Shown: piece by piece, positions 14,501-21,800 of the stretch | Position numbering within the stretch: position 1 is the stretch's first letter | Layout: every line of letters begins with the position of its first letter | Origin: Zygnema circumcarinatum SAG 698-1b | Taxonomy: Eukaryota; Plantae; Zygnematophyceae | DNA: 64,000 nt | Reading direction: 5' to 3' | NCBI GenBank assembly: GCA_037447605.1 | Contig: CM074804.1 | Location: 6,115,909-6,179,908 of the forward strand | Notes under the pieces: generated by a model | Told to the model about the DNA's origin: nothing | Databases searched by the model: none | What the model saw: only the letters and a program-made list of their open reading frames with translations | Program-made: the position numbers and the translations under genes

Positions 14501-17500
14501 AACGAACACTCGGAATAGTCGTTTCTGTTGAAGTCTACATCCATCCTAAAAGTTTCACGAAGTTGATACAAGACTTGACCTTTTCCTCAAAACATCTCAG
14601 TCATGACCTACGCAGAAATTAGACATGAATGCGGTAATTGAATCTGCATGCAGAAGAATATTGAACAAACGCGGTGGACCTACTCCTGAAAGGTCGTACA
14701 TAAGCACTGGCTTCTGCGCTCAATAGCTAGTGCTCATAAGCACGTAAAGGATTGTTTCACAGGCCGCATTCATAACAGCACTGATCCCATCCCAGTCATG
14801 TTCACGTATGCAAGTTCTACTCAAGCTCTTTGCACTCTGGGCCAGCTGCATAGTCTACACTTCACATGGTTGTTCTGTGCACTTAACAAGTTCGTGCTCC
14901 ACATTTTTCCATGCTTTTTTTCCAAAGGTCAGATCAGGAATCCTTCGACAACAACATGCTTGAACACAACACAATTTCCTTAGCATCTGCGGTGGACAAC
15001 ATCAAACAAGTTTAGGCTCCAAGTCATTGATTGAGCTTACCTTCACTACAACTTGCTCAATTCGTGGCATGGTAACGAGAGCTATTCTGCCAACAACAGA
15101 CTCATCAACGGGCACTTTTCTCCAACCCACAACCTCCAGACCCTCCTTTATAAAGACCTCGTTAATCACTGCCAGTGAGAAAAAAAAATACAAGAGATTA
15201 GGGCTTATTTTTCTAACCTCATATCACCTGGCCATGGAACGATTGTGCGAAAGAAAAACATGCATGAAATTTGCTGCACATTTGAAATAAAGCACTCCTT
15301 CTGGAAGGCCAGTAAATCTTCACTTTCTCAGTATCAGAGAACTCCGTGGATCCAACAAAAAAACAACCGAAGCCTTACGCTCGACAGGAACAGATCAAAT
15401 CCTCTTAGACAATTGGAAACTCTTTCTTCTGGGATTTTGTTTGCATTATACTGCCTGAATTCCAACTGCGATCAAGGCGAGCCATGAAAATCGCGTACTG
15501 TCAGCTTTTCAGAATCACGATTGTACACAACTTCGCATCCCCAAAACGACGCCTATCAAACGCCAGCAACTATGAGCATTAGTTCTGACTCACGTTCTTT
15601 GGCAGCTTTTGCTCTGTCCTCAGACTGTGGGAGAAACACCATTCCAACACCAGTCACTGCAGGATCCACCTCTGGGAGGCCCTCAGCCTTGAGCCATGTG
15701 CCTAACAGCTTCCAGGGAATCATTGTCATCAGACCGGCGCCATCGCCAGAGTCATTGTCAGCACTACAGCCTCCCCGATGTTCCATGCATCCGAGAGCAG
15801 TTAAACCCTGTCTCCAGCACAGCCAACCGCATACTCTTGTCAATGCATGATAAGTTTTTTCAAGAACAATAAGATGATTGTCTTATTTTTGTGTAACTCC
15901 GTCACGAGCGACTTGTAGAACGACAACTACTTCAACCTGATGTTCCATAACTTTCTATTAAATCAAAAGGGCATGGTTGCCATCCAGTCGGAGCGACGAC
16001 GTGATGCCATCGGTCTACAAACTCCCAAGAGGAAAGGTGAGGAAGGAGGAGAGGCAGACATACAACGGACACATGAAGACATAGGAATACCATTGATGAG
16101 CTTAAATATTCACCAGCGGTTACGATCCGAACAGCAGCTAGGCCAAATTAACAGCCAACCAAAATAGAGCCAAACCTGCTCCACAATCTTGTGATTGGCC
16201 TCGTTCTTGAGATTGGCGATGAATCCAACTCCACATGCATCTCTCTCGCTCAAAATATCTTCCATGTTGGCCACCTGACAACCCAGAGCCAATGGTATTT
16301 CGCAGTTCAGATTAAACAGAGAAATCACACTTAGAAAGAGAACAGCACCGGGAGATTTACGTAATCAAAAGGCCTATGCTTGAGATTTTTTAAGGGAAAA
16401 CGGAAGTCGATTCAAAGGTGTGTTGCAAGTGAGATAACCACTCATGGCCATATTAATTGACAACCTGGGCATCCTTAAAAACGTCAAGAAAATGCAAACG
16501 AAACATCACTGCTACAGAAAGTGAGTCGTAGTCATTTGTAGGTTTAACAGTGAACTATAAACAGCTCGCCCAGCGAAAAACAGTAACATATAATGCTATA
16601 CAAGCAAACTGGAAGATTGGTAGATATCGAAGCATTAAAACGTCGAATTTGAGGGGTGCTTTAACAGCAAGTAGCCGGTGGGAGGATTACAGACAAGAAG
16701 CTTGGGAGAAGTGGTGTGCGGGTGGAAGCCTTTTATTAGGAATCGAGAGAGCGCCGGCAAGGTGGAGGCACGAGTAGGTTAACAAGCAACAATCAAGAGA
16801 AAAGACTAGTCCGTCCACTCAAAGCTTTCAAACTTCAGCAGTATAGCGCTTTTACTCTCAAATTTTTATTCAACTTAGCACTTACTCCCTCCTTTCTCGT
16901 ACATTCATCCCATCAGATAAACCTGAAAGGATAAAGCTCTCAGTCAAAAGGTCTGACCCCGAAGGACTAGATTTGACAATGGCTGTCGTGTGTACTCAGG
17001 CTTCTCTCAAATGCCCAGTGACAAGGTTTTCACAACGACCTGACTGCTACCTCAGCATGTTATTTAAGCTTAACCGGCCGCCTACCTGCACAGCTGCAAT
17101 TTGCTTGAATTCGTCTTGTGTCGACACCTTCGACACTGTCCAAACCAGCACAAGGTGCAGACAAGTCTCGCACTTCAGCTGTGCATGCAATTGATTAAAG
17201 CCCGCAATCTTTTGGCTGCATTCTCGTTGGTTCGTCAGCAGCCAGCAGTAAACCGATGTACGACTCGAAAGCCAAACTTTGCCCTCATACAAAGGCGAGA
17301 GTTCAAGGTAGAAAAAAAAATCAAGTAACCTAGCGTGCTAATTCATTGGCCAGGCAGGCTCTCACATACTTTACATCCAAAGCGGGCACATCCTTCATGC
17401 TCCTAAACATAAGGCTCTAGCTTCCAACACGTCTTTGGTTGTTCGCCACTGAGCAAGAACCACTCGACGCTTCGACACTGAGCAGATACCGAAGCAGCTA

Positions 17501-18877: not shown

Positions 18878-21800
18878 ATGGCTTGCACTGCCGCCCAAGC
18901 GCTCTCCGCCCCTGCAAGCGGCATTATCGCTGCCTCGGCCCGCCATGGCGCCCCCATGCTTCCCTGCAGCTGCAATCTGAAGGCTGGGAAGTTCTCTGGT
19001 GCGGAACTATTGCGGTTTGCCGTGAAGTCTAAGTCTGAGAAAAAAACAGCCCGGCTAATGGCCGGAAAGCCAGGTGAACTCCTCTAGCCATGTAAATAAG
19101 AGTCCTCATATATTTCAGACACACAGTATCGCAAGGATAAGCACATTGTTGTGGGTGTTGTTTGCACCCACAGTTACGTTGTTGAGCTTTTTAAGGAATG
19201 TCAAGCGCAGGAGCTTGGCCGTAAAAACAGCGAACAATGCTTTTGATTTCTTGTTCTAAAAATTATTCATTTTCCTGCTTATTTTACACTCAAGGGTTGA
19301 GCCCTGTGGACTATTAGGGCGGTTTTGGAAGTATTAAAAGCGTGTCTGCCCCCATTTTGGATGTACGTCCTTAAGGTTAGGCTACCATGATTTATACGAT
19401 ACGGCATTGCATGCACCCATGAGCAAACCTTCTATGGATTGTTAATCATCATTCCAGTCGTTCTGGGTCCCTGTCTCGGAGGTGGTGGCAGTGACGTGAT
19501 GCTCAGTGCAAAGCTATAATGTGCTTTAGTTGTGTAAGCTTTCTGAGTGCCTGTCTGGCCAGTGGATTAGCATGCCAGGTTGCTTGAATGGTTTTTTTTT
19601 TTTTTTTTTTTTTTTTACCTATCATGTCTTTGGTATAAGGGCAATGCAGTTCAGTTTGGCTTTCGAGTCGCATGTCGGTTTACTGCTGGTTGACCGAGAA
19701 TGCAGCAACAAGGTTGCGGGCCTTATTCAACTGCATGTATAGCTGAAGTGCGATTGATTTGTGTGCACCTTGTGCTGTTTTGGACAGTGGCGAAGGTCCT
19801 GACGCAAGACGAACTCAAGCAAATTGCAGCAGAGAAGGTAGGCGGTTGGTTAAGCTCAAACTACTTGCTGAGACAGCCGTCAGGTGTTGCAGCTCGTGAA
19901 AACCTTTCTTGGGAGATACTTGAGTGGAAATGCTGAGAGCCTTTTTCAAGCCTTAATCCTTTGGGGTCAGACATTGTGACTGAGAGCTTTGGCATCTCTG
20001 TGAGTACCTGATGGGATGCAATGAACCAGGAAAGCAGGAAGCGCACTTGAATAGAAACTTAAGTCGAAAAATTTCCATAGCGTCTCCTGTATTACTGAAG
20101 TTTTAGATCGTTAAGTGGAAGGCTAGTCTTTCGTCTTTTGGAGGTGCGGTGCAGCTAGTTGCCCGCTGTGGCCGCTCCTTTAGGAATTGCTTACTGTGCC
20201 AGAGTTGCGTTGACGACATGTCTGACAGCAAGCTGGAAGCCCGTGGATGCAGGCAGTAGAATATGTGGAGAGCGGAATGGTGCTTGGCCTTGGTACCGGC
20301 TCAACTGCAGCATTTGCTGTAGCCAGGATTGGAGAGTTGTTGAAGGTGTGATGATTCGAACTGCATTTGACCATCCGAAATGTACATAGCTAACCGTCAA
20401 AGCTGTTTATAAATGAAAACAAAATCTCGCTCCTTGCTTGTGCAAGGCAGCTGAAGGCACCTGTTGTGGATCTTTTGGTACATACTGGTGGATAGATGCG
20501 CCTGGAGCTTCCGATCTATTGATATCAGACTTGTTGGTAGTTCCGACATTATGTGAGGATGTCTTGATCACTGTGGATGCTCTTATCCTTTCTGGCTGCT
20601 AAGAAAGTCATTCTGGCACTGGTCGTTGTCCCTTTGCAGGAAGGAAAATTAAAGGACATTGTTGGAGTGCCAACATCAAAGGTAAATGGGCCTGTGTCTG
20701 ACTTTATCCTTAAACGTTATTGGATGTCTCAAGGTAGGTCTCCAAAGCAGTCTAAGAAAGTTATGCACAGTCTGCAGTTAGATTTTAGCGTTATAATGGA
20801 TTCTTGAAGGTGAGAGTGATGATACTTTCAAGTTACATATACGAGACCATAGAATTGCTTACTGATGGGTGGCAGATGGAATTTTAGAGTAGGCGAAATG
20901 ACCTCTTTCACCCTTACAGTTATTTTTTTTTCGTTTGGTCGTCTGGGTTTTGCGTCACTGGTTCAAATCAAGTCATCGTTTTGAATTTGACATGTTTCAC
21001 AAATGCTGAAAGATAATAATGAGGCGGTCACTTTTTGCGATAGACTATCTTCAAGATGATTCGATGGTGTATGGACCTCATTAGTTATCCCTGGGCAGAA
21101 TGATAGTTCAAACGTCCATGGCTATCGCCAGAGGATGAACAAAGTGGTTCTTGACAATGCTGAAAGACTTGTTATGTGCAGAGAACAGCAGAGCAAGCAG
21201 CCTCCTTGGGCATTCCCCTGTCCGTATTAGACGACCATCCAAAGGTGAGCACTGCTTTCATTGATGGTACTTCAGGTCTCGTTGTCGTTATGGCATATAG
21301 TGGATTTGGGTGTGCTATTGTGAGTCGGACTTGGTCAAAATGAGATAGTGACCGTTTTTCTTGAAGTACAGGATTTTTATGATTAAGAAATTGTGAATTA
21401 AAATTATAAGCATGGTCGGTCCTTTGATTCTGTCTCAAGCAACCAGCATGTGACAACTACAAACATTAGAAGGGTTTTTAATAAGGGATGGATGAACATT
21501 TTCCTGGCAACCAATCTAGCAAGTTACGGTCTTCCTGTGGCAGATTGATTTGGCAATTGACGGCTCAGATGAAGTGGATCCTGATCTCAATCTGGTAAAA
21601 GGGCGTGGAGGAGCTCTTCTCCGGGAAAAGGTGGGTCAGAGCAGCCATGTCATAGATGAGTATTGACAGTCCTGTTCCCCTGTAAATCTCTGTGCAGACT
21701 ATATCTCTTTCTTACTACGGATGCATTTTACAAATCCTCACATTGATTAAATGTTGCTGCTGCACGAATGCAGCTTAGGCTGTTGCCTTATTTTACAGGG

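Follow-up and report, generated by a model that had tools for sequence, protein, structure and literature searches.

A window of 64,000 nucleotides from the genome of the alga Zygnema circumcarinatum SAG 698-1b (GenBank assembly GCA_037447605.1, contig CM074804.1, positions 6,115,909 to 6,179,908, numbered here from its first letter) contains a gene for ferredoxin-dependent glutamate synthase (Fd-GOGAT; coding span 2594..17962, minus strand) and, head to head with it, a gene of the RpiA family (RPI; coding span 18878..23120, plus strand). We find that Fd-GOGAT has very probably lost the presequence exon that it originally had and that an inverted copy of the 5' end of the adjacent RPI gene has taken its place, so that the first two exons of the glutamate synthase gene are today homologous to those of RPI. 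A preliminary description, made from the letters of the window, had interpreted the locus as a captured transit peptide. The chimera, the donor and the position of the foreign part upstream of Cys1 stood up to analysis, while a promoter shared by duplication, ongoing gene conversion and a recent origin did not.

Results

Homology within the locus was assessed by self-BLAST of the window, followed by one local alignment of the two arms that was scored against shuffled sequences. Self-BLAST, which takes in the comparison of 16500-18000 with 18800-20300 suggested in the preliminary description, returned two inverted blocks between 16795-17969 and 18871-20137 (E 6e-54 and 9e-84). The single alignment of the arm pair extended over minus-strand positions 17990-16795 and plus-strand positions 18851-20137 and reached a score of 832, against a shuffle maximum of 36. 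The inverted copy is 1.2 kb long with about 78% nucleotide identity, introns included. Over aligned columns, identity amounts to 161/196 (82%) for exon 1, 443/586 (76%) for intron 1, 41/50 (82%) for exon 2 and 217/273 (80%) for the alignable part of intron 2. The details given earlier by inspection were reproduced: 48 of 66 columns are identical between the exon 1 peptides, both first exons end at a phase-1 donor with CCAG followed by GTGA, both 50-nt exons lie between GGACAG and GTAGGCGG, intron 1 and part of intron 2 can be aligned up to 16795/20137, and every coordinate holds.

The donor arm (18851..20137, plus strand) comprises the end of the RPI 5' untranslated region (UTR), exon 1 (18878-19073), intron 1, exon 2 (19788-19837) and most of intron 2. 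On the minus strand, the copy begins with 28 nt of the RPI 5' UTR directly above the ATG (17963..17990), which is the upper limit of the duplication. It continues through Fd-GOGAT exon 1 (17764..17962; 66 codons plus 1 nt, phase 1), intron 1 (17136..17763) and the 50-nt exon 2 (17086..17135), and ends within a hybrid intron 2. The 5' part of this intron (16795..17085, 291 nt) is RPI-derived; the remaining 520 nt (16275..16794) have no similarity to the RPI gene, and their acceptor position is common to outgroup genes, which suggests that they are the remainder of the ancestral first intron of Fd-GOGAT. The first native exon, exon 3 (16176..16274), contains the Cys1 codon at 16235-16233, residue 97 of the precursor.

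For evidence of splicing, contigs of four sequencing runs were compared with positions 15500-21400 (5901 letters). Three of the runs (X1, X2 and X4, from two studies) are not recorded as RNA; we take their contigs to be spliced transcripts because they skip exact GT..AG intervals. Such assembled contigs lose rare isoforms, and true transcript starts are not visible in them. All three runs contain the Fd-GOGAT joints 17764>17135, 17086>16274 and 16176>15807 (GT..AG on the minus strand), the first two of which had been predicted in the preliminary description, together with the RPI joints 19073>19788 and 19837>20253 and two further ones. The RPI-like exons are therefore spliced in frame with the glutamate synthase, as that description proposed. 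Depth at the joint from exon 2 to 16274 is 214-321, versus 2-18 for contigs covering the intron. No alternative joint into 16274 was found in the contigs of these runs, within the limits of assemblies that drop rare isoforms, and the unrelated first exon that had been named as the competing possibility did not appear. In all three runs the contigs agree with the window at every base, evidence against misassembly of the arms, an artefact already considered unlikely; no one contig covers the entire locus. The fourth run (X6, same species label, another study) gave no contig matching 15500-21400 at 88%. Unspliced contigs across Fd-GOGAT intron 1 (17109-17793) were also present in X2 and X4, with depths of 17-30 compared with 93-185 at the spliced joint. 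Retention of RPI intron 1 was relatively lower (about 2-6 versus 354-886 at the joint), contig depth being a poor measure of such ratios.

Intron phase accounts for the shape of the copied piece. RPI intron 1 is in phase 1 and RPI intron 2 in phase 0, and the borrowed exons were joined within an intron of matching phase. Since intron 2 is the first phase-0 intron of RPI, the join had to fall there, and a piece of mature RpiA was carried along. Exon 2 converts phase 1 to phase 0 in Fd-GOGAT, so that skipping it shifts the frame and, by reading of the frames, leads to a stop codon within the following exons. The RpiA helix in the glutamate synthase precursor thus appears to be a passenger demanded by intron phase.

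The direction of transfer is given by exon 2. In RPI, this exon reads on into the exon with the GLGTGST motif. Direct comparison with RpiA N-termini showed that a bacterial RpiA begins MKHQDELKQSVGKA ahead of the same motif; the Lentilactobacillus enzyme, which starts MKHQDELKQ, matches exon 2. RpiA models place 14 positions before the start of RPI exon 3 (20253-20345). This exon and the last one match the RpiA models in an exon-by-exon scan, hence below whole-protein cut-offs, and the top PDB match of the gene is 6ZXT. Exon 2 alone, compared with the PDB and NCBIfam, is too short to have been identified, and its identity comes from the N-terminal comparison. Exon 2 thus carries the first helix of mature RpiA, which makes RPI the donor, in agreement with the preliminary description. 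Exon 1 would be polarised solely by forming one block with exon 2.

The recipient is an Fd-GOGAT gene. Using tblastn with a full-length plant enzyme (L082), 1500/1637 residues were matched in order along the intron-rich minus-strand gene, with GATase_2 and glutamate synthase matches. The GltB-like large subunit is covered end to end, Cys1 motif included. The last protein match stops at 2597 with a stop codon immediately next to it; there is no fused beta (NADH) subunit, and the C-terminus is as in Fd-type enzymes (L082, L116 and L001). Joints 1 to 3 of the exon frame are seen in the transcript contigs, and the remaining exons are placed by ordered tblastn matches only. In a tree of the N-terminal region (450 columns, 17 rows), the protein grouped with algal contigs and land plants (93%) inside a green clade (100%). 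Inner nodes of the tree are weak, and the position appears compatible with a streptophyte alga.

The foreign residues lie upstream of Cys1. The solved Fd-GltS chain of Synechocystis (1LLW) starts at the cysteine, and its residue 1 falls opposite residue 14 of the native exon, in a match with a weak E-value and an exact position. Sequences upstream of the ER.ACG motif are variable among cyanobacterial and plant enzymes. Exposure of Cys1 also follows the general behaviour of N-terminal-nucleophile amidotransferases. Together these observations suggest that the N-terminal extension is removed in maturation; a literature search found no paper on Cys1 processing of GOGAT. Exon 1 has the composition of a transit peptide (12 Ser/Thr, 17 Ala and 9 Arg/Lys, with no Asp or Glu), from which we infer that the borrowed part may target the chimera.

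We next consider what the copy replaced. A phase-0 intron stands right before the exon encoding V[AV]NLEDI..ER.ACG in moss-like, poplar-like and grass-like loci (L081, L088 and L095 are among the loci with this intron; plant names were read from the sequences themselves) and in four algal contigs, which also have the next intron in common with the window. On this comparison, the copy joins Fd-GOGAT at an ancestral phase-0 intron. The two algal contigs that reach far enough upstream (L163 and L170) have one presequence exon each, of 85 and 92 codons, which in the genomic DNA ends with YE at a phase-0 donor. These presequences and those of plants scored at shuffle level against exon 1 of the window gene, whereas RPI exon 1 scored 232. 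The distance from Met to Cys1 is 97 residues in the window and 99 and 106 in L163 and L170. Because the outgroups own a presequence exon at the same intron, the copy is best read as having taken the place of an existing Fd-GOGAT presequence exon rather than as a first gain, a point absent from the preliminary description. Neither the spacer between the genes nor the native 520-nt part of intron 2 showed any relic of an old exon. Compared with each other, the presequence exons of the two contigs (L163 2656-2910 and L170 6492-6767) score 31 and are unalignable, although Tyr-Glu precedes the donor in both.

Gene order and wider occurrence were also examined. RPI was absent within 6.4 kb of Fd-GOGAT in L170 and near GOGAT in the other loci examined. 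Directly upstream of Fd-GOGAT in L170, on the same strand, lies a gene that reads as a bile-acid/sodium-symporter-like gene (3300-5650, plus strand). A second species with the chimera did not emerge from exon 1 against 90% clusters (two length windows), from exact look-ups, from a two-exon profile against 50% representatives or from metagenome contigs; these searches covered short proteins or cluster representatives, and their blanks are uninformative about relatives.

The copied frame appears to be under purifying selection. Nonsynonymous divergence (dN) between the copies is 0.14 and synonymous divergence (dS) 0.45 over 81 codons (Fisher P 0.0009), a ratio that alone is no proof of constraint on the Fd-GOGAT side, since it blends both lineages and the introns give a lower neutral distance. 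The exon columns contain one in-frame 3-nt gap in 249, compared with 49 gap openings in 1074 intron columns. The chance for a neutral Fd-GOGAT copy to avoid frameshifts would be about 0.02.

Divergence between the arms is 0.24-0.45 per site, a fifth to a third of neutral sites differing, which points to a duplication that is unsaturated and not young. The "fairly recent" event of the preliminary description is therefore unsupported. The same applies to ongoing gene conversion: the longest identical run is 27 nt (P 0.24) and the best 60-column window has 54/60 identities, so that no identical tract exceeds chance and there is no sign of recent conversion. A 150-column intronic stretch flanking the 50-nt exon (17294-17085) is 89% identical, above the exon itself. 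The excess is borderline (P 0.004 relative to the intron columns as a whole and 0.05 relative to the well-aligned ones), and a search of the stretch for structured RNA gave no Rfam match. It may contain splicing elements or be an old conversion tract.

The two genes are separated by an unduplicated spacer of 860 nt (17991..18850) with 65% G+C and three G-boxes. The similarity between the arms extends only 28 nt above the ATG, to about where the RPI transcript begins. Contigs of RPI reach their limit at 18837-18844; those of Fd-GOGAT extend to 17978-18125, past the copied arm, and positions 18258-18651 have no contig depth. A TATA-like TATAAG is found at 18059-18054, on the Fd-GOGAT side only. 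Further upstream no homology was detected, the best colinear match (about 18064-18020 against 18802-18832) being reached by 41-47 of 300 shuffles. The spacer probably holds the Fd-GOGAT 5' UTR and both divergent promoters. In contrast to the promoter shared by duplication that had been proposed, promoter sequence was not detectably copied, and the genes seem merely to have a divergent spacer in common. An in-frame ATG at 17998-17996 (minus strand), 12 codons above the Fd-GOGAT start, lies outside the copied arm in a weaker context. Contigs extending to 18102-18125 contain it, and a precursor longer by 12 residues is possible.

Discussion

We propose the following sequence of events. The end of the RPI 5' UTR, exon 1, intron 1, exon 2 and part of intron 2 were copied in inverted orientation, and within an intron the copy was linked to the phase-0 acceptor that Fd-GOGAT had ancestrally; the resulting gene is transcribed and its exons are spliced in frame. 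The precursor would be imported into the plastid by its RPI-derived transit peptide. After a stromal cut close to where exon 1 ends, about 30 residues would remain, consisting of the RpiA helix and a native pro-sequence of 13 residues, and these would be removed when Cys1 is exposed, giving an ordinary mature enzyme. The inverted copy, the short unduplicated spacer, the loss of the old exon and one end inside an intron are the anatomy that switch-and-return during replication or fold-back repair would leave. A single local copy-and-replace event that left the Fd-GOGAT promoter in place, by a template switch or by fold-back repair spanning the 860-nt spacer, would be the most economical route, and we give it modest preference; the junctions are too decayed to decide among routes.

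Several points weigh against this proposal. Plastid import and both cleavages are steps predicted from sequence. The RNA support comes from assembled contigs, which lose rare isoforms. Measured against the intron rate (0.24-0.30) rather than dS, the ratio for the two lineages combined rises to about 0.5, and the case for constraint on the residues of the Fd-GOGAT copy would depend mainly on the indel count. Finally, with 75-79% identity in the mature protein, the outgroups are only distantly related, so any earlier adjacency of GOGAT and RPI would be conjectural, and the upstream neighbour in L170 is a transporter gene, not RPI.

A route in two steps would yield the same product and function and is a serious, if less probable, alternative to direct copying. 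Here the whole RPI gene would have been duplicated head to head, after which intron 2 of the copy became fused to intron 1 of Fd-GOGAT through a deletion or a rearrangement. Head-to-head paralogue pairs do exist in this genome, one of them in the window at 27.6-36.2 kb, and a breakpoint inside an intron is what a fusion would leave. However, neither the native intron nor the rest of the window contains a further RPI remnant, and a copy of the whole gene would be expected to carry its promoter, yet homology stops at the UTR. It is unlikely that a larger rearrangement set the body of Fd-GOGAT beside RPI, with the inverted copy made at the breakpoint, the old promoter and exon 1 left elsewhere and a new promoter drawn from the back of the RPI promoter. 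Such an event would fit the different upstream neighbour in L170 and the missing relic of the old exon in the spacer and native intron, but the outgroups are too distant for informative gene order and the missing relic is also compatible with replacement.

The RPI-like exons could also be a minor or tolerated leader with no targeting role, used beside another first exon or an internal start. In its favour, rare isoforms and true starts escape detection in contigs, intron 2 is covered by contigs of low depth, and an in-frame Met lies four codons into exon 3. We regard this as very unlikely, because the sole joint into 16274 comes from exon 2 at a depth more than tenfold that of the intron contigs, the frame has been kept through about 0.3-0.45 substitutions per neutral site, and translation from exon 3 would yield a protein lacking any presequence, whereas Fd-GOGAT is plastidial (PMC5775586). 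Transfer of exon 1 from GOGAT to RPI, or 5' ends kept alike by conversion, is about as improbable: exon 1 is polarised only through its block with exon 2 and the intronic stretch around exon 2 is 89% identical, but exon 2 belongs to mature RpiA and is continuous with exon 1 and intron 1 in a single block, the GOGAT genes of outgroups carry one phase-0 exon rather than a phase-1 exon, and there is no long identical tract.

Replacement by an inverted RPI copy is label borrowing of a known kind, here by a recipient that already had a presequence. Its N-terminal exons are homologous to an unrelated donor gene, as in other presequences gained by exon shuffling. In plant cytochrome c1, GapC donor exons reportedly form the presequence of an old nuclear gene, an example ascribed to Long et al. 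1996. It is alike in being an exon-shuffled presequence in an old nuclear gene and differs in being mitochondrial, with donor exons that were no targeting signal and a donor that is not an adjacent inverted gene. A multi-genome survey lists exon shuffling among the routes to presequences (PMC7456531). The closest plastid parallel is rpl32 of Populus and other Malpighiales, which uses a Cu/Zn SOD transit peptide (Ueda et al. 2007, as described in PMC8018952). There too, a plastid transit peptide was obtained by exon shuffling from a duplicated gene for an unrelated plastid protein, and the donor is recognisable by identity. However, rpl32 came fresh from the plastid with no transit peptide, whereas Fd-GOGAT is an old nuclear gene that would have swapped an existing one, and in the window the donor is 860 nt away, inverted, with introns that can still be aligned. 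The presequences of rice rps11-1 (from atp2), Arabidopsis sdh3 (hsp70) and carrot rps10 (hsp22) were likewise copied from existing genes (PMC2631504), but they are mitochondrial and tied to organelle-to-nucleus transfer, and that paper describes no replacement of a working presequence. The prior absence of a presequence, which characterises gains of the rpl32 and rps11 type, does not apply here, as the outgroups carry a presequence exon of their own.

The four-point template-switch model, in which a switch and return substitutes the reverse complement of nearby sequence (PMC5453318), resembles the locus in producing an inverted repeat flanked by unlike sequence. It was described for short events in primates, whereas the copy in the window is 1.2 kb long with junctions too decayed for a microhomology test. 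Plant Fd-GOGAT is a single polypeptide of ~1600 residues encoded by an intron-rich gene, with a presequence of ~100 residues before the Cys (113 in pine; PMC5775586). The window gene agrees in polypeptide size, in its many introns and in presequence length and differs in that 83 of its 96 presequence residues are RPI-derived and lie on two exons rather than one. A literature search of partial coverage, none of it aimed at a named species, found no paper on an RPI-GOGAT chimera.

At this locus one can see the donor, the breakpoints, the intron phases and the outgroup state together. Orthologous proteins mostly have transit peptides that cannot be aligned and whose sources can seldom be traced. 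We suggest tentatively, and with less than even confidence, that local inverted duplication of a neighbour's 5' exons is a recurring route of transit-peptide replacement in this lineage. If so, repeated capture from neighbours, beyond point mutation, could help to explain why the transit peptides of orthologues do not align. The present case indicates that a central and ancient plastid enzyme can trade a working presequence for that of its neighbour, with intron phase and its own N-terminal trimming letting a piece of a foreign enzyme ride along. GOGAT and RPI would make a natural pair for testing the interchangeability of transit peptides.

Other features of the window

The head-to-head paralogues in the window are intron-containing genes at 27650-30040 (minus strand) and 34100-36230 (plus strand), 45-71% identical by exon, with weak O-fucosyltransferase (PF10250) matches below the cut-off. 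With about 4 kb between the matched parts, they look like an older inverted gene duplication. A minus-strand gene at about 43500-49550 reads as casein-kinase-1-like in translation; the one exon scanned had no Pfam match. A kinesin motor gene (PF00225) lies at 57900-61000 on the plus strand. Between them, self-BLAST revealed near-identical tandem copies within 52325-56958 (53213-54836 against 55334-56958, 99.4%; 52325-52936 against 54847-55458, 99.3%). These copies are interspersed with tandem arrays of 24-nt and 5-nt units, there are 10 N near 54.8 kb, and the copies may be a very recent duplication or an assembly artefact.

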